A DNA stretch of 64,000 bases from Octopus sinensis (taxonomy: Eukaryota). The notes under the pieces are model-generated. The model was not told the origin of the DNA, did no database searches, and saw only the letters and a program-made list of their open reading frames with translations. The stretch is taken from positions 84,758 through 148,757 of the forward strand of contig NW_021833076.1 of assembly GCF_006345805.1 (NCBI RefSeq), in the 5' to 3' direction. Positions 10,312 to 63,980 of this stretch are shown here, piece by piece (the stretch's first letter is position 1; each line of letters starts with the position of its first letter). The translations under genes and the position numbers were made by a program.

Positions 10312-11781
10312 ATGGTTATTTCGAATGGCTATGTTCTGCTGTTCTCTCTATTGCTGACTGGAATGGATGTCTTGTATAGTTTCCACATAAATCGAGAATA
10401 CTACCCCTCCATTAATTATTTATTCACGTCCAAGCTCTCCCTCATGGTGCTCATTAGAGGAACTAAAATTGCAGATTATGGGATTTCAAGGTCTTGTAAT
10501 TCTGTACGAGATTGGGCAGCTGACTGTGAGGTTATTAGTGGGGAGACTGCTTAGCGCGGAGATAGAAGTATTGGTAGATGTGATAGTTCAGACTATCAAG
10601 GATAAGTTCTTTGTTTTCTGCATGGAGGTGGGACTGATGGTCTCCTTCTCCTCCATCCACCAGACTGAGAAGAACTACTCCATTTATGTCTTCCTGCTGG
10701 TCACCATCCTCCAATGCTTCCATTGGATCCTCGCCATCAAAATTGACTCGGTTGACTGTCGGGAGTGTTTGTAGATGCACCGAATGGCCAGAATATCCCC
10801 CTTATTCATGTTCCGCACTCTACTTTTAATTCTCATTCTTCTCTTCTGTGACTTGGCGAGTGTCATTCGGAGGGGACAGTTCTCGATATACTCCATCCTC
10901 TCCTTCGAGGTGGCCCTCATGACCATCGACCTCTTCAACTCGTCCTTTCGATTCTTCCTCTACTTGTACGACCACTTCAATGGGGACTCGGACTCCTCGG
11001 GGTGTCTCCTCTACGCGGACTGCTTCTTTGGTATCCTTCCACATTTACTCAGTCTCCCTCAAATTCATATGCAATTTGTTGTACTGCATCGGACTCGTCT
11101 ATTCCTCCTTCCTCCCTCTCCACTTGCTCAGGAGGACGTACATATTCTTCCAGTACTCGTCGTGCTAACTGGCAGCACGGCCTCTGTTCATTGGACCAAC
11201 ATCGTCAACTCCCGACATGTCATGGCCGTCCTGCAGCAGCCGTATTGGCAGTTGATTATTCCAGACAATTCGATGCCCTCCAAAGTGACTTGGAGAGGGA
11301 CGACATGTGCATCATTTGCAGGGAGCCCATGGTCCCCCTCGAAGCCAGGAAAATAATGTGTGGCCACGTTTTCCACATGCACTGTCTTCAACGGTGGCTC
11401 CAACAACAGCAGACATGTCCAATGTGTAGGGCGGACATCAAAATCCCCACTCCTCCAAGTCCTGTCCTCACTGATTTGGCCGGCCTTCACCCTTTTAGCG
11501 TGGGTCAGATGCCCCTCATCCCCGAAATGTTGAATGGACTGAGTGATGCCGAATTGTCAATGATCGAGTCCATGGAGAGGAGTGCTATTCTCCACCGAAT
11601 TGAGTGTCTGAGGGATATCAACAATCTGCTCAATGCCGCCGCTCTTCGCATGAACCAATACAATCTGTTGTTTCCCCCTTTAATGTGCAGAGTCGTGAAT
11701 GCCCCCCCAGACCAGACGGGCGGATTGACACAGGAAGAGATCCGGCAGAGGAGAGTTGATGCCATCAGACGGGGACTATAA
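10312..11781 (+). CDS. SYVN1: ERAD E3 ubiquitin ligase HRD1/synoviolin
   Basis: N-terminal TM segments (REYYPSINYLFTSK, LQCFHWIL), RING-H2 CIICREPM...CGHVFHMHCLQRWLQQQQTCPMCR, HAF-H segment LSDAELSMIESMERSAILHRIECLRDINNLLNAAALRMNQY, C-terminal EIRQRRV. Confidence 0.9.
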
Positions 11782-22924: not shown

Positions 22925-23061
22925 TATTTGTTAGATATTGGAATTCGCTAATTTTTATTTAAACGTATTTCGCTTATCCTCTACCGCAACCACATTTTTA
23001 AATGAATTTCCTCTAATAATAAAACATTAATATTCGATACTTTTCGTTCATGTAGCCTTAA

Positions 23062-23135
23062 GATCGTCATGTGGTTCACCTTCTCGTGGAGACGATTGGA
23101 TGCTGATTTCACATCAGCAAACACAAACAGAACCA
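23062..23135 (+). ncRNA. HDV-like self-cleaving ribozyme fold at the element 5' end
   Basis: P1 GAUCGUC/GACGAUU (7 bp, G1-U wobble), core ACC-UUCUCGU-GG, P1.1 GG, P4 UGCUGAU/AUCAGCA, P2 UGGUUC/GAACCA; G1 is the first base after the TSD. J4/2 is atypically long and P3 has an A-A mismatch. Confidence 0.7.
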
Positions 23136-26100
23136 ATTTTTCCCCCTTGCCAACCAACCTGTCAACGGTTGGTTGGTTAGTAGTGGCTACGGGACGAGCG
23201 CCAAGCTTACGTTCCCTGACTCTATTGTTGATTCGGTGTGGAGATGTGGAACAAAACCCTGGACCTGAGCCTATTAGAACACTAACCATCCTTCAATTGA
23301 ACATCAACGGGATTTCCAAGAAATGCAATGACCTACGCTACTTTCTACACACGAACTCTATTGATATAGCTCTTATTCAAGAGACCAAACTTACTCCAAA
23401 ATCCCAAACCCCCCGTTTTAAGGGTTATTCCACCATTCGTCGTGACCGCCAGTCTGGAAAGCCTGGCGGTGGTGTCTCATCTCTCATTCACGAGGCCATT
23501 CCCTTTGCAGACTCAACTGCCAACATTGAATCTCTCTTAACTAATGATCGATTTACCGAAATTTCATCTATTCAAATTAACATTAACAAGATATGTTACT
23601 CTGTTGTTAACACATATATCCCCCCGATTTCGTCATGTGCTCCCAATTATACACCGAACTTACTGCCTCTTTTTTCAATTGAAAACTGTATTCTATGTGG
23701 CGACTTCAACGCCCACCATCCTCTCTGGTTATCCACAAACAAAACTGACAAACGTGGCCAGCAAATCACAACGGATGCGGAAGAATTGATCACTCTAAAC
23801 AACCCTCTTCTACACACCCGCTGTGCAATGCGACCTGGAGATTCAAACACTTCTCCTGACATTACCTTATGTTCCCCAAACATCGCCCTCGACGCCAAAT
23901 GGACAGTTCTGTACGACCTACCAACGGACCACAATCCTATTCTAATCAAATAAATAAACATCACCCTGTAAAGAAGAGAATTACGAAGACCTACATTAAC
24001 TACAAACGTGGGAAATGGGACTCGTTCAGGAGTGAAACTGAACGTATATTCAGTATTTTTTCTTGCTCCTCCATTCAATCATTTGACACTGCCGTTGCTT
24101 TCTTTACTAGTACACTTCTTTCTGCGGACAAAAAATTTATCCCCGCGGCTTCATCCGAAATCACGGCCTCCATTTCCCCCCACCTATCATTGAACTATTC
24201 AAAAAACGAAGGAGGATCAAATCGACGACTTCTATCAATGGAAATGGAGAATCTCTAGCAGAAATCAACAAACAAATTGACGAATTAATCAAGAAACATA
24301 AAACTGACGAATGGAATGATTTTATCACTTCAATAACCCCAAATACTGGATCCCGTGCTTTCTGGAGAACCCTCAAGAAAATTCACACGAGGCAAACATG
24401 TCCCCTCTCACATGCCACCGGTACCTCGACCAAAAAATCTGTCCTATCTTTCCAGGATCAAGCCAACATCTTAATTCGCCATTATGCAAAAATCAGTCAC
24501 CTTCCTACCCCAAAGGATCTCCGTTTCGTAAGAAAATCACATTATAAGTCAAATGACAATTCTACTGACTATATTAACATCCCAGAATCATTTACCAGGC
24601 AACTTGTTGTTAACTCGCGGAATTCTAACGCCAGAGGTCCTGATGGCCTTGCCATCCACACCTAAAAAATCTGGGTCCTAATGGCTTTCTGGCTCTGACC
24701 AATTTAATCGAATACTCGATCAACCATGGTCTGGTTCCTATGCTTTGGAAGAAATCTACCATCATCCCTATCCCAAAGCCAAATCGTGATACTGACCCTC
24801 CTCTTTTCGACCTATCTCTTTGATCTCAGTGGTTTCAAAAATAACAGAGCGAGTTGTATTGAGCATCATAAAACCTTTCCTCCCATTTGCTGAATCTCAA
24901 CATGGCTTTCGTTCTTTGCATTCCACTTCCACCCATCTTTCAAAACTGACACAATTCATTGCGGATGGGTTTAACAATCATAAGCCACCTCAAAGAACAA
25001 TTATTGCATCCATCGACATTGAAAAGGCATTTGACAGAACGTCAAGACACGTTCTGTGTAGGAAAATAACCGATACGGAATTCCCCCACCAAATAAAGTC
25101 ATGGCTACTCTCTTTTCTCTCTGGGCGTCTTGGTCGCACCACAATCATGTCTTCTTACTCACGCTACAAATACTTGCCTAACGGAGTTCCCCAAGGCTCG
25201 GTCCTTTCACCTGCCTTATTTAACTTACATCTGTCAAATATCCCGACGAACAATAATACTCTACTTCTCTCCTACGCTGATGACTTAATTTTTGCCTCCC
25301 GCCACCAAAACATAATCACCGCTTCTGGATTTCTGCAGGAACACATGAACACTCTTTCGTCCTGGCTGAAATGCAATCTTCTTCAACCTTCTCCTTCCAA
25401 ATCATCTGTTACGCTATTCACAACTGACCGCCGTCAGTTCAACTTAGAGCCTAAACTATTCCTAGACAACACTCCACTCCCAGTTGAAAAATCCCCCAAA
25501 ATCTTGGGTCTGATATTTGATTGCTGTTTGTCCTTCTCGAAACATGTTTCATATATCTGTGGAAAATCCCAGAAAAAACTCAATGTGCTCCGAGCTATTG
25601 CGGGGACTTCATTTGGGCAGGATAAGGAAAGTCTAACAACTGTATACAAGCAGTTTATTAGAACAACTATGAACTACGCCATCCCTGCTTGGGGTTCCTG
25701 CTTATCTAATACAAACCTTGAAAAACTTCAGAGAACTCAAAACTCAGCATTACGAATTATTACCGGCTGTCTAAAAACGACACCTACCGACCACCTACAT
25801 TGGGAATCGAAAATCCTTCCAATCAGTGACCATTTTGAAATGCTCGGGCTGCAATTTCTTGACAAATGCCGAACCCTAAATCACCCTGGCTACTTCCTCT
25901 GGCACTCCACTAACAACAGGAGAATAGTTCCGACCCTCGCGGACAAAGTCCGCAAGCTTATACGATCCCCTCCGGACATTAACCAGAAGGGGATTCACGA
26001 CCTGGTGGCTACGAGGACAATCAGATGTCTTGGAATAAACAAGCTTCTGGGACGCCTTCCGCCGCCAATTAATAAGATCGAATCCTCCCTCTCAAGAGAA

Positions 26101-26356
26101 GCCCGAGTGAACTTGGCTCGTCTCCGCTGTGGCCACCATACTGGCCTACACGATTATCGCATAAAAATCGGTCTTGGTGAAATAACCCCTTCCTATTCCC
26201 TCAACGACCTTTTCTCCTGTCCAGGCCCGCCTTCTACTTCCTCGGAACACCGGATCACGATCGGGGATCTTTGGGAGCGTCCGACATTGGCCCTAACGTT
26301 CTTGTTAGCCACCGGCTTCCTTCAATTGAAGGGGCCGGGGGTAAATAAATAAATAA
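23062..26356 (+). mobile_element. Full-length Vingi/Ingi-clade non-LTR retrotransposon (2A + APE + RT, single ORF about 23069-26352 with a few 1-bp indels)
   Basis: 12-bp TSD ATGTAGCCTTAA (23050-23061, 26357-26368), (TAAA)n tail, APE motifs QLNING / IQETKL / GDFNAH / PDIT / DHNPI, RT GVPQGSVLSP and YADD, C-terminal RLRCGH...LWERP..FL, no RNase H, 3.3 kb. Confidence 0.9.
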
Positions 26357-26665
26357 ATGTAGCCTTAAATTCAAAGCGCGATTTTGTCAGCATTTGTCAT
26401 TGCTGAGGAATGCAGGATTGTGAGATGATTGATTTGAATTAACTTTGTTTTAAAACAAGACAAAACCATCGATTATTAGCCAATCAGTTAACAGGTTCCA
26501 ATTAAATCAGTCCGTAGAAAGCTGAGAATAAGGCCTATAAATAAGACCGTGGTTGCTTAAATTACAAATACATTAAATCCGGATCTGAAAATAAAAGTGA
26601 AATTTAGGATTGACAAGTCACTTAAACAAAACATAATATTTTAGTGAAATTGGTTAATTACGAGT

Positions 26666-29407
26666 TTACGTAAAACTGTAGTTATCGTAAAAGTAGTAGT
26701 TCCCGGGAGGGTCCTCTACTTTGATTGCGTTTTGGCTGTTTGACCAATCGCTTTTTCCATTCTGTTTTAAAAGCGGGATTTTTTCTTGCTTGATTAGACT
26801 CAGCAAATTGTCAATGCTCCGGGAAAGACCTTTAATAGGACACTGACAAAATTAGTGAGAGATCTGCACCGTAATTCTGGGATCTGCTTCTTCTTTTACA
26901 GATTTGTTAATTCTGGTCTTTCGAATCCCCTGCTTCTTTTTCTTCTTTGGTTGTGTAGTGGAACCTAAACGTCAGTGCTTGGGTCACTTGGAAGTTGCCG
27001 ACATTCTTCTGCGTGAGTCACCCAGCCTTGTTTTTTGCAACGGGTGCTACAAAAATATACTTCTCTGCACCGGTTGCACGGAAAAAGCGGAACCAACATT
27101 CGCCCACACTCGTAGCAAACGTTACTCGGAAATCTACATTTTAGCATTCAAAGCCACTTTTTTGGAGTTGTTTCGTTAGTCTGTGTAAATGTCAAAGTCT
27201 GGTTAGTTCGTCCCGGACAACCGAGCACCTTCATCACCATGTCTCCATGCTTAGCCAAAGTCGGAATATAAATGCATCTCGCCTTGCTATTCCGGACTAG
27301 TTTGATTGGTGTCCTCAAAATACCAATTTCTCCGCCCTCAACTTCTTGGTCAAATCTCAAAGCTTCCACTTCTCTGATCTTCTTGCGTATCTGTGTGGCA
27401 AGGAAAGACACGAGTTCATTAAATTCGGACACTTTTGCTTTGTCTTCTGTACTGAGCGTGTAGAAGGGGACACTGAAAAGTCTTTTTGACTAGACAGTGA
27501 TACATAAAACTACGTTCTCATAGTAGTTGTACACGTGATCCAAACAGGTTCCTAGCGATTTCTTGTTTTCTACAGCGACCTGTGCCAAAATGTCCATTTC
27601 CGAGTTCAGACACTTTTTGACCTAAAGATCAAAATGAGAAATGCAACAAATGATATTTTCTCGTGTATGGGAATCTTGTTACTCGTCAAGAGGACACAGA
27701 GAGAGTTGGATCGAGGGAGACCCAAGTCGAGGGTGATCGAAGCCCCGTTTTCCATCAACAAGTCTGCAGTCTCGGGGTTGTTCTGAGACAATGCTAAAGA
27801 AAGGGCGGAGTTGCCGCTCCAAATGGCGTTCACTTCAGCCCCATATTTTATTAGGAGAGCAATGTTTTTGTGTCTAAGCTGGGACAATGCAGGTGTTTTG
27901 GGAACCTCAGCATTTACATTCGTGCTGCAAGCTATATGTAGAGGAGTCATTCCTGCCGTCGGAATGATAGAATATATGTAGAGGGAGTTCATAATCTGAA
28001 TACACAAAGCAGTCACTACCGATTCTTCGAGGAGTCCACTCTCGGATACCCTGGCGTTGACATCTGCTCCAGCATTGAGAAGATCCTCTGTGATCTCGGT
28101 CCCCTGTTCGACATGCATTGCGACAGCCAAATGAATGAGATTGCAGGATAACTGAATGCTCAAAGTGGCAGTACTTTGTTCTTCATGTTTGGATCGGCAT
28201 TTCTGAGTAACAAAATTCTGACCATCTCTGAGTCCCCACACAGGACTGCCTCGTACAAAGGAAAGGTTCGAGCAGATCCCTGATTTGGATTAGCCCCGTA
28301 GTCCAACAAGATCTCGATAATTTCACGTTGAAGGGCGTTTAGTTGCAGGGAATGAGACGTATTGAACGCAGATAAAAGTTCATTTGTGCTGGGAAACAGT
28401 CTATGCTGAAGAGGCGATTCTCTGTAGTAATTCTGGAAACTGAGCAACAAAGCCGATCTGTCGTCGTCTGACAGGCGCCCCACGTCCGCCCGAAATTTGA
28501 GGAGGCGACTGACGATTTGTTTATTGCAGAGAACTGCTGCATACATCAATGCTGTCCTTCCTTGCTTGTCGCACACGTCTAAACAGATTTGTTCATTCAG
28601 CAAAGCCGAGTTGACATTCCGAATGTTATTTTCGGCACAATCCATAATAAATTGTTTCGATAATTTCTCCAACCTTCCTTCCTTCAAAAACAACTTCCGG
28701 TCCCCTCCAATTTCTCTTATTCGGTAGTTTCCATAGTTAGCGTCACGGATATGACTAATAAATGAGTTCCATGAGAAATACCGAAGAACGTGACTCTGCA
28801 TATTCTGAAATATGGGGGAATTGTTCTCCAGTGTTACAAATTCCTTACTCAGTGAGTCCGTGTCATCAATAGAGTACTGAGATTGGAAATAGTCAGACTC
28901 GAATTCCTTAATATTGAGTGCAATGTTGGCTCGGGTTAGACAATTCTTGTAAACAGAGGAAGGGACTCCCTCTTGTCCAGCATCACTCAGTCGGGGCTTG
29001 TGGTTTTGCTTTACCAGGCACTGAACCGTGTTAGAGATTTTGTGTGATTTGTCATATTCTAATAAATCGACTCGCAAGGGAATAGTCCCATATAATTTCA
29101 TCAATTTTCCGCCAAAAAACAGACCAACATCCTGAGTGTCGTCCTCATAACTGACGACTCCAGGACCGAAGGGAAATCCACGGAGAAACATTCCCTTTCA
29201 ATATGATTTGAAGGATATACAGCATAAGATGAACCATCGACATATTTGCAGTATCCAAACCCCTCCTTTTCGTTAAAATAAAACGTTCCTTCGTAACAGT
29301 CCCCATTTTCACACGTCTCCACTCCGCGGCCGTGTTTCTTACCACAAAATAAGCGGACAGTACTCTAACATGTAATCAAACTTTCTTACCTTTTGATTTT
29401 CGATCAT
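26666..29407 (-). CDS. ANKMY1: Ankyrin repeat and MYND domain-containing protein 1 (MORN + ANK + MYND)
   Basis: MORN GRGVETCENGDCYEG and GFPFGPGVVSYED, ankyrins GRTALMYAA / GMTPLHIAC / GNSALSLAL, MYND CYECGR...CNRCREVYFCSTRCKKQGWVTHAEEC. Ends inferred. Confidence 0.85.
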
Positions 29408-45597: not shown

Positions 45598-47386
45598 GAA
45601 CAAGACAAACTTCACTAACAAACTCGACTTAATAGCTGCAGGAATTGAACAGCTAAAGGACTCTTCAAAAATGTTTACGGCAACCGCCTACTCAACAGGA
45701 AAAAACAAACTAACAAACTCAAAATCCATGACAGCAATGGAAGATTCATCACAAATCCCAAAGAGCAGGCTGAATATATAGCCTCGTATTTCGAGAGTAT
45801 ATTAACCGCTCACGGAGAAATATCCGATTACACCAGCGGATACACCACTCATCTCAGCCTACCTATCACCACCGGTGAAGTATCAACTGCAATAGCCAAA
45901 CTTAAAAATGGCCGCTCCTCTGGACCGGATGGAATAAATTCAGAACTGTTTAAATACGGACCGCCTGCACTAACAGACAAACTGGCGGAGCTACTCAATG
46001 GTATGTTTATGAAAAAGGAATTCCTCGGTCTTGATTCCGGATTATTAATACCGATCCAAAAGCCTAACAAGCAGGCTGGGCCTGTCGAAAATCTACGCCC
46101 TATAATCTTGCTAAACACCTTACGGAAACTTTGGGATTAGTTACACTGAACCGAATAAGAGAACAAGTGGACAACTATCTATCCCCGAGTCATAGTGGAT
46201 TTAGGACAGGAAGATCCACCGCCGATGCTGTCTGGGCCACAAGTGGTACTGCGCTATCACCCAGAGATACAAAAGTGCAACAACAGTCCTGGGAATAGAC
46301 CTGTCTAGGGCCTTTGACACGGTACGCCGTGGTCTACTCCTCAAAATACTGGAACATTCCTGGACCCTGACTCTGTCAATATGATAAGAGTACTACTATC
46401 GAACACAAAGCTCAAGGTGCGGGTCGGCACGGCGTTTTCCCGTGAATTCACGTGCAACGTCGGTACCCCTCAGGGAGACGCCCTCTCGCCGTTGCTATTC
46501 GTGATCTATCTGGAGACGGCACTACGAGACCTTCGAAAATTCTATGCTGGCAATATCGTCGAAATTGTATATGCAGATGACGTCGACTTCGTGTCAGACG
46601 ACAAATCGGCCTTACTTCGACTCCTTGAAGTGGCACCTGCTGAGCTGAACAGATGGTTCCTTAAAATGAACGTTGGAAAAACCGACATCGTTGAAATCAT
46701 GAGGATGGAGAGCAGCTCAAGTGAAGCCTGGCGCAAAACGAACAAACTCGGTTCTCTACTTGGGGACGGCCATGATATTGTCAGAAGAAAGGCTCTCGCT
46801 TGGGCCACGATGAACAAGATAAAGAAAGAGTGGATCGGCAAACGACGACTCTGTACGTCACTTCGTCTGAGGATGTATGAAGCCTTTGTCAAACCAATCC
46901 TGACATATAATTCGGCGACCTGGGGAATGTCTAGTACTGAACAACGTGGACTCGATTCTTTTCACCGCAGGCAACTTAGATCCCTACTGGGATTGAACTG
47001 GCCTATAAGAATCAACCAGGAATCGCTATACAATAGATGCAGAACTGGCCCTCTGAGTGTGGAAATCGTTAATATGCGGTGGAGGTTATTTGGCCATATT
47101 CTACGAATGGACATGCTTCCCCAGCTAACATAGCAATGGAGGGCTACTTCCTGAAAGAGGGATCGAGCTTCCGTGGACGTCCACGTGTTACGCTGCCGAA
47201 AACACTTGACGGAGACCTGAAATGTGTGAAGAAAAGGCTAAGGAGTGGTGAGGATCTGGACGAGCTGAGGAAACTCGCTCACGACAGAGGAGGTTGGAGG
47301 AGGCTGGTTCAAAGGATTGTTTTTAATGCTGCACGAGTAAAATTATAACTAATATGATTCTACGTATGTTGCAAATAATAATAATA
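45598..47386 (+). mobile_element. RTE-like non-LTR retrotransposon, RT-only copy 1
   Basis: 13-bp TSD ATTCTTGTTTGGT (45585-45597, 47387-47399), (TAA)n tail, GIDLSRAFD, GTPQGDALSP, YADD, RWRLFGHILR, RGRPR. Confidence 0.92.
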
Positions 47387-48228: not shown

Positions 48229-49759
48229 CAGTCTGTACCAAAACATTATAATATTGGCAAATTTATCAATAAATCATTTGTATCTCTACTTATATCAATT
48301 TTTAAGTGTTAATTTTTAGCATGTAATTTCTAAATTGACTTATCTAACTATTCTTAAATAAATTAATTCTTAAAAATATATTACATGCTAAAAATATATT
48401 GTCATGTACCAAAACATTATAATAATTTTTGTCATGTAACAAAAGATTATAATATTTCTAGTATTTGATGTTTTTCCCTCGAGATTTTAGTACAGCATCT
48501 ACTCTTTTTGCATTGATTCATTAAAATTTTTATTTCTTCAATTTTAATTTCATTCCATATGATTTTCAGTTCATTTTTTAGATCCTCTATCGTTTTTATT
48601 CCAAGAGCCATAACTTTTTGTTTCATTATTCCCCAAAGATTTTCGAATGGATTAAGATCAGGCGAATTAGGAGGCCATTTCATAGATTAATTTTTTGGTT
48701 TTGAATCCACTCAATCGTATCTTTTGCAGTGTGTGCAGGAGCATTGTCCTGTTGAAAAATGTAATTACATCCATCATACAACTTTTGACCAGTTGAAATT
48801 AAATTTTTTTCTAATATTTCTCTGTATACTAATCCATTTACAGTTGAATCAATAATTGAAAGCGGGCTCAACCCATTAAAACTCATCGCTGCCCACACCA
48901 TAGCTCCTTTTCTGTAATGAAGCTTTTGATTTATGCATGAAGGATGAATTGTTTCATTTCTTTTACGCCAAACATACGCACCTTTTTCACCAATTGACAG
49001 CAGAAACTTAGATTCGTCAGAAAAAATAACTTTGGACCACTGTTCTATAGTCCAGTTTATTCTCCCTTTAGCCCAAGCTAATCTTTGCTTCTGTTGTTTT
49101 AATGTTAGGAAGGGCTTGCAAACAGGGGTTCTGGAAAAAAATCCCAATTGGTTTAGACGTCTGCTTATTGTCATTCGGCTCAAATTAATTCCATGTGGAA
49201 TAAGTTTTTCGGAAATTTCCTTAATAGAGATGAATCTATTTTCCATCAAAACTCTTTGAATAACTCTTTCTTCTCGTGAAGACGTTAATTTCGGCCTTCC
49301 CTTTCCGACACGATTTTTTTTCTCGTTATTCTGCTTTCGCAACACGTTGGAAACTGATCCTTGTGAGCAATTTGTGATTTCCGCGATTTTGTTTTGACTA
49401 AGTCCAAAGGTATGGAGATTTAAAATAATTTTTTTGGTATCAAATGACAAGTCGCTTTTTTGTCCCTTGTCAATTAAATAATAACGTGTTAAATTTAAAA
49501 TAAATTTGTTTTTGTATGAAAAATATAAAAATTATTATAATGTTATGGTACATGACAGAAATTATTATAATGTTATGGTACATGACAATTTGAATCACCC
49601 CAACCAGTGATCTTGTAAAATCAAATAATTTTTTAAATAGTTAAAGAAAGTAAATTTGAATTTGGATGTAAAAAATTAAGTCATAAAAATGGATATTTGT
49701 GAAAATAGAGTTATATTTTAACTAAATTTACGAGTATTATAATGTTTTGGTACAGACTG
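48229..49759 (-). mobile_element. Complete Tc1 element (DD34E) with IR/DR ends, one frameshift
   Basis: TA TSDs, terminal CAGTCTGTACCAAAACATTATAATA at both ends, three GTACCAAAACATTATAATA-like repeats per end, FSDESKF / QQDNAPAH / SPDLNPFE with 34 residues between D and E. Confidence 0.95.
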
Positions 49760-50655
49760 TACTAACATATTGTGTGTTGTGCTTTTATTTTCCAATTAAT
49801 GTAATTAGCAAATATTTTATTAAAATTAAATCATAATAATTACAACTAATCTACTAAGTTTTTTGAAATTAGAATATTTATAAGATTTTCAAAGAAAAAC
49901 TAAATATGAATTTTGAATCATTTTTTTTGGCGAGGAGTGTAAGATGTCTTCTCGCTCAAATAAGAAAAGTCGTCATTATCAAAACGAATATTTAAAATAT
50001 GGGTTTATTCAAAGTACTGAAGATACAAAACAGCCTTATTGTCTTATTTGTCAATGTTCTTTCTCAAATGAGGCGATGAAGCCATCACGATTACAGGATC
50101 ATCTAAAACGCAAGCACCCGGATAAAATATCAAAGCCGATTGAATATTTTCAAAATTTAAAATACAAGATTATATGTCCTGATTTACATCAATCTTTAAA
50201 TATTGTAATTAAAACAATTAACAGAATAAAAACACGAAGCAAATGTGATCGTCTTTTTAGAAAGTTTTGTAAGGATGCTGGTGAAGATTTTATTCGACTT
50301 TTATTACACACGGAAGTAAGATGGCTTTCAAAAGGAAATGCTTTAGAAAAATTTGTTAATCTTTACGATGCAATAGTCGCATTTTTGCAGACTGAAGAAG
50401 ACTTGGTTTTGGCAGAAGAGATAATTTCACGAAAAAATGATATATTCTATTTGAATTGGATTTTTACAAAATTTAATGAAATTACTATTCTTCTTCAAGG
50501 AAATTTTGTCAACATGATTGATTGCAAAAAAATAATGAAAACATTTGCAAGAAAATTATTGCTTTATCGACATAATTTTTCTATAAATCAGTTTGGAAAC
50601 ATTTCACAACTATCTGAGATAAGTAAATATTTTAGTCAAAACAATATTATGTGAC

Positions 50656-52658
50656 TGACTCAGTTGATCATGATTTTTTGTTTCACGTTTTGGATTGTTC
50701 TGGAATCCCGCTTTGGATCGTAAACTTTGTGAAGAGCGTAGTTAAGAAGTGGGCAGTAAAGCTGCATATGGAAGGTAGAAGAATTGGATCAGTGAAGTTA
50801 AACCGAGGAATTTTACAGGGAGACTCATTGTCTCCTTTACTATTTGTTATGGTATTAGATCCTCTAAGCAGGATCCTTAATTCCGTGTTTCCAAAACTTG
50901 AAATTAACCAGGAAGATCCCAATATGTTAACATATTCTACTAATCATTTGCTATTTATTGACGATCTAAAAATATTTGCTCTCAAACAAGACACTTTACT
51001 CAAAATGATGGAAGCTGTTAACGGATTTTTTAAAATTGTTGGTTTGGAGATGAATTCAGAAAAATCAGCGTCTAATTTGGAATCATTATCATGTTGTAAG
51101 ACTATTGACGGAATCAGTGGATATCGGTATTTGGGTGTACTTGAAGATGGTGGAAGCAATGTTCTTAAGAATAGAGTTATGGACTCTATCTTTGAGAATG
51201 TTAAGAAGAGGATAACTATGCTATCGAAAACAAAACTCAACTCTGTGAATCTGTTTCGTGCTATAAATGAATATGCATTGTCACTATATAAAAATTATAT
51301 TGGGCTAATCAATATTGAACCTTCTGAATTTGATGATATTGACAGACAAATACGGCAATTGCTTACGTCGCTCAGATTACATCTCAAACCTGCAAATAAA
51401 GAGAGACTGTATTTAAACCGGAAGGCTCTTGGAAGAGGGCTTTCATCAGTTACTTTCAAAAGTGAACTAATGCTCTTTCAGTTCCTTACGAGTCTGGAAA
51501 ATATGTCAACTATATGCTTACGGAGGGCGGGGATTCTGCGTGTAATTAAAATGAATAAATGGCATTTGGCTATGATCGCAGGATTTCTATCCTCCAAATA
51601 TGCAATTATTGATAAGAAGAGTATTACTATGGAGTCTCTAAAGTTCAGTCAGATACAATATTTACAAAAGAAAATTAGTTCTAAAGCACTACATTCTGTG
51701 CTTTTCAAATGTGTGGATGAACCTAATGTTGATTTACCTGCATCCTCAGAATGGCTATCTAATGGAAATAATGGGCCACGAAGCGAAGCATTGTATTCTC
51801 TTTTGCAAGATCGAAACTTGTTCTTTGCATCCGCTGACTCATTATGCAATCATTGTAAGAAAAGCAAGAAAACTGTTGACCACATGGCTATCAGTGTGGT
51901 AAAATGCTCAACAGTGATTATCTCCGGAGACACAACGAAGTTGTGAAGTGTATTCACCTTAACTTGTGCCGAATGTATGGACTCAAAAAACAAGACGATT
52001 GAAGGGACATTCTGTTCAGTCAACACTGTCGACGGGAAAAGTTGAAATCAGGGTTGATTCTACAATCCTCACCGAAACAAAAGTAGAATATAACAAGCCA
52101 GATATCTTTGTCCATGACAAAGTCAGAAACGAAATAAATCTAATTGAAGTGGGTATTACTTCACAGGATCGCCTCAAGCAAGTGGAGGTTGAAAAGTGTC
52201 ACAAGTATGACCTATTGGCAAGTGAGCTTTCGCTTCTGTATAGCTGTCAAGTAAAAATAATTCTGTGGTTATGACATGGGATGGAGTTGTCTCGAAATGC
52301 TTCAAAAATTATATGAAGAACTATCTATTGAAGCAGGAACGAGGACATACATCCAATCCGTTGTACTGAAAAGAACGCTCGAGAGTATGATGATCGAACA
52401 CAAGCACGGAATGAAGGTATCTGGTGAAGAATACGCTTCTGCTTCCAACCGGTATGTGGAGATGGCATGCAAAAATGAAGACGACCCATGAATGCTAAAG
52501 AAGATGCAATGGTTGAATCAGATGTGGTAGTGGGGAGTAAGAGGCAGCTGAAAGTAGACTCTTCTTCCAAGAGAAGGAGAGTGGATATCAGCGAGCTGGA
52601 GTGAGATCTGCTTAGTTTCTGATTAACTATTATTTATTATTGGTTTAAAACGTTATAT
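50656..52658 (+). mobile_element. 5'-truncated R4-like non-LTR retrotransposon inserted in the Ginger TIR
   Basis: GILQGDSLSPLLF, LLFIDDLK, CNHCKKSKKTVDH, KPDIFVHDK..LIEVGIT; flanked by duplicated TGTGAC (50650-50655, 52659-52664). Confidence 0.9.
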
Positions 52659-62187: not shown

Positions 62188-63980
62188 ATTATTATTATTA
62201 TTTGCAACATACGTAGAATCATATTAGTTATAATTTTACTCGTGCAGCATTAAAAACAATCCTTTGAACCAGCCTCCTCCAACCTCCTCTGTCGTGAGCG
62301 AGTTTCTCAGCTCGTCCAGATCCTCACCACTCCTTAGCCTTTTCTTCACACATTTCAGGTCTCCGTCAAGTGTTTCCGGCAGCGTAACACGTGGACGTCC
62401 ACGGAAGCTCGATCCCTCTTTCAGGAAGTAGCCCTCCATTGCTATGTTAGCTGGGGCAAGCATGTCCATTCGTAGAATATGGCCAAATAACCTCCACCGC
62501 ATATTGACGATTTCCACACTCAGAGGGCCAGTTCTGCATCTATTGTATAGCGATTCCTGGTTGATTCTTATAGGCCAGTTCAATCCCAGTAGGGATCTAA
62601 GTTGCCTGCGGTGAAAAGAATCGAGTCCACGTTGTTCAGTACTAGACATTCCCCAGGTCGCCGAATTATATGTCAGGATTGGTTTGACAAAGGCTTCATA
62701 CATCCTCAGACGAAGTGACGTACAGAGTCGTCGTTTGCCGATCCACTCTTTCTTTATCTTGTTCATCGTGGCCCAAGCGAGAGCCTTTCTTCTGACAATA
62801 TCATGGCCGTCCCCAAGTAGAGAACCGAGTTTGTTCGTTTTGCGCCAGGCTTCACTTGAGCTGCTCTCCATCCTCATGATTTCAACGATGTCGGTTTTTC
62901 CAACGTTCATTTTAAGGAACCATCTGTTCAGCTCAGCAGGTGCCACTTCAAGGAGTCGAAGTAAGGCCGATTTGTCGTCTGACACGAAGTCGACGTCATC
63001 TGCATATACAATTTCGACGATATTGCCAGCATAGAATTTTCGAAGGTCTCGTAGTGCCGTCTCCAGATAGATCACGAATAGCAACGGCGAGAGGGCGTCT
63101 CCCTGAGGGGTACCGACGTTGCACGTGAATTCACGGGAAAACGCCGTGCCGACCCGCACCTTGAGCTTTGTGTTCGATAGTAGTACTCTTATCATATTGA
63201 TAGAGTCAGGGTCCAGGAATTGTTCCAGTATTTTGAGGAGTAGACCACGGCGTACCGTGTCAAAGGCCCTTGACAGGTCTATTCCCAGGACTGTTGTTGC
63301 ACTTTTGTATCTCTGGGTGATAGCGCAGTACCACTTGTGGGCCCAGACAGCATCGGCGGTGGATCTTCCTGTCCTAAATCCACTATGACTCGGGGATAGA
63401 TAGTTGTCCACTTGTTCTCTTATTCGGTTCAGTGTAACTAATCCCAAAAGTTTCCGTAAGGTGTTTAGCAAGATTATAAGGCGTAGATTTTCGACAGGCC
63501 CAGCCTGCTTGTTAGGCTTTTGGATCGGTATTAATAATCCGGAATCAAGACCGAGGAATTCCTTTTTCATAAACATACCATTGAGTAGCTCCGCCAGTTT
63601 GTCTGTTAGTGCAGGCGGTCCGTATTTAGACAGTTCTGAATTTATTCCATCCGGTCCAGAGGAGCGGCCATTTTTAAGTTTGGCTATTGCAGTTGATACT
63701 TCACCGGTGGTGATAGGTAGGCTGAGATGAGTGGTGTATCCGCTGGTGTAATCGGATATTCTCCGTGAGCGGTTAATATACTCTCGAAATACGAGGCTAT
63801 ATATTCAGCCTGCTCTTTGGGATTGTGATGAATCTTCCATTGCTGTCATGGATTTTGAGTTTGTTAGTTTGTTTTTTCCTGTTGAGTAGGCGGATTGCCG
63901 TAAACATTTTTGAAGAGTCCTTTAGCTGTTCAATTCCTGCAGCTATTAAGTCGAGTTTGTTAGTGAAGTTTGTCTTGTTC
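62188..63980 (-). mobile_element. RTE-like non-LTR retrotransposon, RT-only copy 2
   Basis: Near-identical inverted copy of 45598-47386; 446-aa ORF 62236-63576; (TAA)n tail; imperfect TSD ACTATTTCCGAT / ACATTTCGAT. Confidence 0.92.

Follow-up and report, generated by a model that had tools for sequence, protein, structure and literature searches.

A probable HDV-like ribozyme as the 5′ terminus of an APE-type, 2A-bearing non-LTR retrotransposon of Octopus sinensis

The element and its boundaries

The window analysed here is a stretch of 64,000 nucleotides of the Octopus sinensis genome (NCBI RefSeq assembly GCF_006345805.1, contig NW_021833076.1, positions 84,758 to 148,757 of the forward strand), and its own numbering is used throughout. 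It contains a retrotransposon that lacks long terminal repeats (non-LTR retrotransposon), of the apurinic/apyrimidinic endonuclease (APE)/reverse transcriptase type with a single-open reading frame (ORF) layout, which occupies positions 23062-26356 of the plus strand (3,295 bp). The first 74 nucleotides of this element, 23062-23135, probably constitute a self-cleaving ribozyme of the hepatitis delta virus (HDV) type that forms the 5′ end of the retrotransposon. The element is flanked by a target site duplication (TSD), ATGTAGCCTTAA, whose copies at 23050-23061 and 26357-26368 (plus strand) are exact repeats of each other; a search of the window with up to one mismatch returned no third match. 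Since the bases flanking both copies differ, the TSD is exactly 12 bp long and the element starts at G23062. At the 3′ end, the element terminates in a (TAAA)n tail, TAAATAAATAAATAA (26342-26356, plus strand), within which the stop codon is located. The G+C content of the element is 0.44, compared with 0.33-0.35 in the flanks.

All coding features of the element lie on the plus strand. A 2A (StopGo) peptide, ...LLLIRCGDVEQNPGP (23207-23266), for which skipping is predicted between Gly (23261-23263) and Pro (23264-23266), directly precedes the APE domain (23273-23950; PF14529, 9e-15; PF03372, 7.6e-07), and the reverse transcriptase with the C-terminal region follows at 24796-26352 (PF00078, 8.8e-28), where it is colinear with the ORF of the related locus L004. 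The domain matches of the element are limited to the APE and the reverse transcriptase (RVT_1), and no ribonuclease H (RNase H) domain was detected in it. L004, the closest relative, encodes a single ORF of 1271 amino acids and is colinear with the window element; the finger block that L004 has after its 2A peptide and before its endonuclease is missing from the latter. Comparison with the L004 ORF places four frameshifts in the copy, near 23950-65, 24141-50, 24653-59 and 24787-96, and no in-frame stop codon was found within any of the five ORF segments that align to L004. The copy is thus young, because its TSD is identical at 12 of 12 positions and the five segments are free of in-frame stops, and it is complete at both ends and broken. 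An earlier note on this stretch of DNA had described the element as full-length, which holds for the two ends, as marked by TSD and tail, and fails for the coding sequence with its frameshifts. A second copy of the element was not found in the window.

The proposed ribozyme fold

The sequence 23062-23135 (plus strand) can be arranged into a nested double pseudoknot of 74 nucleotides with predicted cleavage between A23061 and G23062, an arrangement that is matched by two descriptors and by the fold of related elements. Helix P1 is formed by GAUCGUC (23062-23068) and GACGAUU (23091-23097), which pair at 7 of 7 positions with the wobble pair G23062.U23097 at the cleavage site. The junction J1/2 (23069-23071) reads AUG, the only in-frame AUG of the leader. 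P2 consists of UGGUUC (23072-23077) and GAACCA (23130-23135), all six pairs being of the Watson-Crick type with a duplex energy of about -6.3 kcal/mol. P3, which together with loop L3 spans 23078-23090, pairs ACC with GGA (23078-80/23088-90) through C23079-G23089 and C23080-G23088, leaving an A23078.A23090 mismatch. L3, UUCUCGU (23081-23087), contributes U23082 and C23083 to P1.1, whose 3′ strand is GG at 23098-23099 (C23083-G23098 and U23082.G23099, that is, UC/GG). The P4 hairpin UGCUGAU-UUCAC-AUCAGCA (23101-23119) is a perfect 7-nt inverted repeat, pairs at 7 of 7 positions (23101-07/23113-19) and is kept in the minimum-free-energy fold. Finally, J4/2, AACACAAACA (23120-23129), comprises 10 nt with four cytosines, among them C23124 as the putative catalytic base within CAAA.

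The strand order P1-P2-P3-L3-P3'-P1'-P1.1-P4-J4/2-P2' is complete and the same as in the HDV ribozyme. The site further matches the HDV-like class in having a P1 of 6-7 bp that opens with G.U or G-C and in its L3/P1.1 pattern. In HDV numbering, an L3 of 7-8 nt begins with U (position 1) and has its G at about position 6; this G is described as important (PMC3774820). The first base of P1 is G23062, the first base after the TSD, and this boundary is fixed independently of the fold. All helices and junctions that the earlier note had named, including P1, P1.1, P2, P4, the A-A in P3 and the 10-nt J4/2, were recovered at the coordinates given there, and its central proposal, an HDV-like double pseudoknot predicted to be cleaved at the base that directly follows the TSD, is borne out by the sequence and by the descriptors.

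Chance expectation

A descriptor that demanded only complementary segments in the HDV order, applied to both strands of the window, gave approximately 43 matches, or about one per 3 kb, and is worthless as a test. The outcome is different as soon as the loop is considered: when L3 was required to read U-Y-C-N-N-G-N(N), the resulting HDV-type descriptor matched the window once, at the 23062 site, compared with a mean of 0.063 matches in 300 dinucleotide shuffles (128 kb, both strands), and with the additional requirement of P2 and P4 of at least 6 bp each, none of the 300 shuffles yielded a match. A second descriptor was derived from related elements, leaving the features of the window copy unused, and combined L3 as U-N-Y-N-C-G-N, P1.1, a P4 of at least 5 bp and C-R-A-R in J4/2. 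Its sole match in the window is again the 23062 site (shuffle mean 0.005, non-zero in 1 of 200 shuffles). The matches of both descriptors begin on the first element base as marked by the TSD. Flexible scoring of 450-nt leaders did not discriminate, as GC-rich leaders gave many equally high scores.

The fold in related elements

A sample of 29 related loci was retrieved, in which the endonucleases share 31-44% and the reverse transcriptases up to 49% protein identity with the window element; no closer relative was found. The named protein matches come from the crustaceans Petrolisthes, Trinorchestia and Oratosquilla, and most others are marine metagenome contigs; the best of these matches, at 35-49% identity, are crustacean or unnamed proteins labelled 'reverse transcriptase domain'. 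The elements that show the ribozyme fold share 35-45% protein identity with the window element. The ribozyme architecture recurs upstream of the 2A peptide, in coding-strand orientation, in L024 (1308-1379), L025 (1630-1694), L026 (1314-1379), L011 (44-130), L015 (60-129), L014 (3-100) and L009 (342-428), and weaker versions without a good P1.1 were found in L001 (6099-6171) and L005 (307-373). In L024, the layout is CCCGUC-C-UGGGAGG-A-GCC-UCCACGU-GGU-GGCGGG-GG-[P4]-ACGAAAGG-CCUCCCA, and in L011 it is GCUUCC-AAACA-GAUACA-GCC-UACACGC-GGU-GGAAGU-GU-[P4]-ACAAAU-UGUAUC; relative to L011, L015 carries compensatory changes in P1 (GGUCCA/UGGACU), P2 (GAUGCA/UGCAUC) and P4. Three lineages of relatives also start P1 with G.U. 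P3 of the relatives reads GCC/GGU, CCC/GGG or GGG/CCC, and their L3 follows the pattern U-N-Y-N-C-G-N. A convincing fold was not found in L002, L003, L006, L008, L010 and L027. The contig of L004 begins 14 nt before the ribozyme core, and L020 possesses the core, P2, P4 and J4/2 without a partner strand for P1. In L028 (1-110), P2, P3, L3 (UUCACGA), P1.1, P4 and J4/2 (GCGAAAG) are present and a partner for P1 was not found; two partial duplications of GAGGTGGCAGCGAGC are located upstream of the core of this locus.

Across seven to nine lineages, the sequences of P1, P2 and P4 are unrelated and yet paired. In a trimmed alignment, 97.9% of the cells pair, compared with 37-47% when the partners are slid by one to three columns, and double changes occur at all 21 of 21 pairs. 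A scan for the shared L3 pattern gave 11 matches in 345 kb versus 3.3 in shuffled sequences; 8 of the 11 lie at the position upstream of the 2A peptide, and these have the top scores. Covariation between copies had been proposed in the earlier note as a check, and it is now available from distant relatives, in seven lineages of which the stems have changed and still pair, and not from copies of the same family, none of which were found. The second expectation, a shared 5′ end, was seen outside the window: in L024, L025 and L026, which represent three insertions of a single family within the same assembly, the upstream flanks are unrelated, and near-identity begins exactly at C1 of P1 (CCCGTCC...), the first base of the helix. 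The coincidence of element boundary and ribozyme seen in the window thereby recurs three more times.

The probable catalytic cytosine

The earlier note had left the catalytic cytosine ambiguous among several cytosines of J4/2. The junction contains the motif C-R-A-A (once C-A-A-G), located 1-3 nt before the 3′ strand of P2, in 10 of 10 sequences including the window: it reads CGAA in L024, L025, L026 and L009, CAAA in L011, L014, L015, L001 and the window, and CAAG in L005. Neither this motif nor the U-N-Y-N-C-G-N pattern of L3 was imposed by the first search of the relatives. The catalytic site of the HDV ribozyme is C75-G-A-A, and in the HDV-like class the catalytic cytosine of J4/2 precedes purines and lies near the 3′ strand of P2. 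Because the motif is common to the relatives, and by analogy with C75-G-A-A, the catalytic base of the window copy is most likely C23124, which lies 6 nt before the 3′ strand of P2, and the former ambiguity is thereby narrowed to one candidate.

The leader and the 2A peptide

A 2A peptide (GD[VI]ExNPGP) opens the ORF of nearly all relatives whose sequence extends sufficiently far upstream, and it is usually followed by a C-x2-C/PHD finger and then by the endonuclease; the finger block is without counterpart in the window copy. Of 10 elements that carry the ribozyme, 9 have no stop codon in the 2A frame between ribozyme and 2A peptide; in shuffles, a leader free of stops is expected at 0.05-0.27 for each. 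Of 20 loci with a 2A peptide, 17 keep this frame open over 165 nt or more upstream, whereas a stop codon mostly occurs within 3-60 nt in each of the two remaining frames. An in-frame ATG is missing from the leader in about half of the 20. In the window, the 2A frame is open across the whole leader including the ribozyme (23006-23236), and its only in-frame ATG is that of J1/2 at 23069. These reading frames suggest that translation runs through the ribozyme region, or that the region is at least maintained as an open frame, and that the leader is split off by the 2A peptide; the open, AUG-poor leader would fit non-AUG or ribozyme-assisted initiation.

Open frames of this kind can also be read differently, namely that the structure is kept mainly for another job, as an internal promoter, as an internal ribosome entry site-like element or as a binding site for the element's own protein, with cleavage being secondary or absent. 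The frame that stays open through the ribozyme in nine elements and the leaders without ATG do point to a role in translation, and dual roles are documented for L1Tc, whose Pr77 is promoter and ribozyme, and have been proposed for R2 (PMC3383444, PMC6765202). However, in these known cases the additional role accompanies cleavage instead of taking its place, and another job would leave unexplained why the element and P1 share their first nucleotide and why features of the HDV catalytic core, the U...G positions of L3, P1.1 and C-R-A-A, are conserved. This explanation is considered unlikely.

The leader downstream of the ribozyme (23136-23236) has a fold z-score of -2.56. An inverted-repeat search revealed a perfect 10-bp hairpin, CCAACCAACC/GGUUGGUUGG, at 23150-23176 of the plus strand (23150-59/23167-76); the hairpin CCAACCAACC/GGTTGGTTGG overlaps the sequence GCCAACC-AAC, where several relatives have a Kozak-like GCCRRCC-AUG-G. 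A run of 5-7 T residues, often in a small hairpin (GACCG-TTTTTT-CGGTC), is located between ribozyme and 2A peptide in L001, L011, L014, L015, L016 and L020, and its counterpart in the window is ATTTTTCCCCC at 23136-23149.

Counter-evidence and alternative explanations

A number of results weigh against an HDV-like ribozyme at 23062-23135, and the first group of them concerns model searches. An Rfam scan of the whole window at the gathering score gave no match, and in the region 22950-23300 at E<=10 no HDV-type match was obtained, with two weak small nucleolar RNA-like chance matches on the opposite strand. As Rfam release 15 also returned no HDV-type match, even at E<=10, for six well-formed relatives (L024, L011, L014, L015, L009 and L026), the negative result at 23062 carries little weight. 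A covariance model, R1, was built from nine relatives trimmed to equal length in an ungapped alignment (A6), with the window sequence left out; MAFFT alignments of full-length or lightly trimmed ribozymes misaligned the 3′ half and were not used. R1 did not recover 23062-23135 at E<=10; however, the model scores poorly on its own full-length source sequences, assigning them only 10-32 bits and missing L009. L020, the locus without a partner strand for P1, received 16.4 bits from R1. In addition, the structures of the relatives were found by a complementarity search, so that the pairing percentages given above are inflated; independent evidence comes from the excess of matches over shuffled sequences, from a position and strand that do not vary, from the motifs in L3 and J4/2, and from the element boundaries.

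Taken at face value, these search results would favour a chance resemblance, in which an internal promoter or a stop of reverse transcription determines the 5′ end and the complementary segments have no catalytic role. The same could be argued from the structure-only descriptor, which finds a match about every 3 kb, and from the minimum-free-energy nested fold, whose z-score is only -1.2, pseudoknots lying outside this fold model. However, the L3-constrained site is unique in the window and starts on the exact boundary base, the relatives-derived descriptor is expected to give only 0.005 matches by chance, the same fold with covarying stems occupies the same place in at least seven lineages, and three copies of one family start at the first base of P1. 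A chance resemblance is already disfavoured by these results and is regarded as very improbable.

The second group of adverse findings concerns the window copy itself. In HDV-like ribozymes, P3 has 3 bp and closes L3. The outer pair of P3 is A.A in this copy, whereas the relatives pair G.U (five lineages), G-C or C-G at this position, and J4/2 is four nucleotides longer than in any relative, the extra bases being AACA before C23124. The best nested fold, which forms via UUCAC/GUGGA and excludes P2 and P3, reaches -18.9 kcal/mol, and the sum for the pseudoknot is roughly -20 kcal/mol (-13.7 for P1, P3 and P4 together, and about -6.3 for P2); by these calculations, the pseudoknot appears energetically competitive and of about equal stability. 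In the upstream flank, 22988-22995 (AACCACAT) is a perfect 8-nt complement of the J1/2 and P2 strand at 23069-23076 and might, in a read-through RNA, pair with this strand in competition with P2; a match of this kind is at about chance level. To these are added the four frameshifts and the fact that only one copy of the family is known from the window and the searched collections, so that covariation within the family is not available.

Several of these features are accounted for if the copy descends from a real HDV-like ribozyme and is itself catalytically dead, the master having had an intact P3 and a shorter J4/2, with the A.A mismatch and the extra bases acquired upon insertion or by decay, as were the indels that break the ORF. 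The competing fold and the AAC in place of the relatives' Kozak-like ATG are in line with such decay, and inactive ribozymes are known from dead R2 and SIDER copies (PMC3774820, PMC4035085). On the other hand, identical TSD copies and five ORF segments without in-frame stops mark the copy as young, all 7+6+7 pairs of P1, P2 and P4 are intact, as are the U...G positions of L3 and P1.1, and the outer P3 pair is merely a G.U wobble in most relatives. Moreover, an active R2 ribozyme with a mismatch in P3 is on record (PMC3774820), so the A.A in the window need not be fatal. Decay of this one copy is thus a serious possibility that falls somewhat short of being probable, and judged from its sequence, the chances that the window copy is still active appear about even.

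A model for release and integration

By analogy with R2 and L1Tc, the HDV-like ribozyme at the 5′ end of the octopus element would act as follows. Transcription would begin upstream and yield a longer RNA that includes the element, and the nascent RNA would fold into the nested double pseudoknot of P1, P1.1, P2, P3 and P4. The cytosine of J4/2, putatively C23124, together with a bound Mg2+ ion would then catalyse the attack of the 2'-OH of A23061 (nucleotide -1) on the next phosphate, thereby releasing an element RNA with a 5'-OH at G23062; self-cleavage in the HDV-like class depends on Mg2+ and leaves a 5'-OH and a 2',3'-cyclic phosphate. Translation of the element RNA would proceed without a cap and would use the frame that, from the 5′ end onwards, stays open across the ribozyme; separation of the leader from the endonuclease/reverse transcriptase protein would fall to the 2A peptide. 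Target-primed reverse transcription of the full RNA would finally set the ribozyme directly beside a new TSD.

Judging from the related sequences, the device appears to be common to a broad group of elements. A further and much more tentative proposal is that a widespread clade of non-LTR retrotransposons from marine invertebrates, of the type found in crustaceans, carries a fixed 5′ module, in which an HDV-like ribozyme lies inside an ORF, usually devoid of AUG, that extends from the first RNA nucleotide to the 2A peptide. The uncapped 5'-OH RNA would be translated from a non-AUG or ribozyme-assisted start and the 2A peptide would discard the leader peptide; the pairing of ribozyme and 2A peptide, so far on record only for trypanosome L1Tc/ingi, might then be either an ancient linked device or the outcome of repeated convergence.

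Relation to known systems

HDV-like ribozymes placed 5′-terminally in non-LTR elements have been established for R2, L1Tc/ingi, Baggins and RTE, and many intergenic HDV-like copies with conserved downstream and varied upstream sequence have been described (PMC3774820, PMC3185411, PMC4035085, PMC6765202). The trypanosomatid L1Tc/ingi elements, with L1TcRz in Pr77, resemble the window element in several respects: the HDV-like ribozyme occupies about the first 75 nt of an APE-type, single-ORF, dispersed element and cleaves 5′ of nucleotide +1, as predicted for the octopus element (PMC3185411, PMC4035085), and the TSDs are usually 12 bp long, as in the window (PMC6765202). L1Tc is also the documented case of an element that combines a ribozyme with a 2A peptide. 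In contrast to L1Tc, the window element resides in an animal host and has named relatives in crustaceans, no RNase H domain was detected in it, and its tail is (TAAA)n rather than poly(A). No resemblance in sequence to Pr77 was noticed, although no search aimed at it was made. The R2 ribozymes share the double-pseudoknot architecture and free the element from a co-transcript by cleavage at or near the 5′ junction, and their core is tolerant, with a P1 of 6-7 bp, a variable P4 and a J1/4 of 0-2 nt (PMC3774820). It has been proposed that the R2 ribozyme supports cap-independent translation (PMC6765202). R2 elements, however, are specific for a site in the 28S ribosomal DNA, use a restriction-like endonuclease and have no 2A peptide, whereas the window element is of the dispersed type, with an APE domain and a 3-nt J1/2. 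In other clades, promoter-less non-LTR elements are likewise freed from read-through RNA by a 5′ HDV-like ribozyme, and their signature of conserved downstream and unrelated upstream sequence is the same as in the window, L024, L025 and L026 (PMC6765202).

Odon et al. 2013 (PMC3708506) report an N-terminal 2A peptide in non-LTR elements with a single ORF that belong to the clades Rex1, Crack, L2, L2A, CR1 and Ingi. The same study describes a 2A peptide and a PHD-type finger before the APE in CR1, Crack, L2, Rex1 and Ingi, found no 2A peptide in Vingi and makes no mention of ribozymes (PMC3708506). These metazoan elements share the GD(V/I)ExNPGP motif and the single long ORF with the window clade, as well as the PHD-type finger with the relatives of the window element; unlike them, the window copy itself lacks the finger block. 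2A-bearing elements of the CR1/Crack/L2 type may already figure in Webb et al. 2009 or Ruminski et al. 2011. The label Vingi-like, which the earlier note had given to the element, appears doubtful, because the clade has an N-terminal 2A peptide and the relatives have a PHD-type finger, and no 2A peptide was found in Vingi (PMC3708506). A single ORF with APE and reverse transcriptase and without RNase H does fit Vingi but is shared by many clades and is not discriminating.

If the assignment is correct, the non-LTR elements that use an HDV-like ribozyme to generate the 5′ end of their RNA gain a metazoan, 2A-bearing group. Devices of this kind are well established, and the surprise for specialists is moderate. 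The relatives provide at least seven divergent natural sequences of the fold, which should be useful to widen the narrow Rfam models that miss them. The elements would also link a self-cleaving 5′ end to a 2A peptide, both of which make a normal promoter, cap and start codon unnecessary. In the annotation of genomes, the true full-length 5′ ends of these elements would be recognisable by the ribozyme.

Neighbourhood of the element in the window

Elsewhere in the window, three further ORFs of reverse transcriptases of the non-LTR type and an ORF of a Tc1/mariner-like transposase were observed, at 46381-47133 (+), 50651-51946 (+), 62236-63576 (-) and 48680-49450 (-). The HDV-like descriptors gave no match at any of these four ORFs. 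Closer to the octopus element, ankyrin-repeat ORFs are located 1.2 kb downstream on the opposite strand (27606-29191), and an ORF encoding a RING finger lies upstream of the element at 11002-11781 (+).

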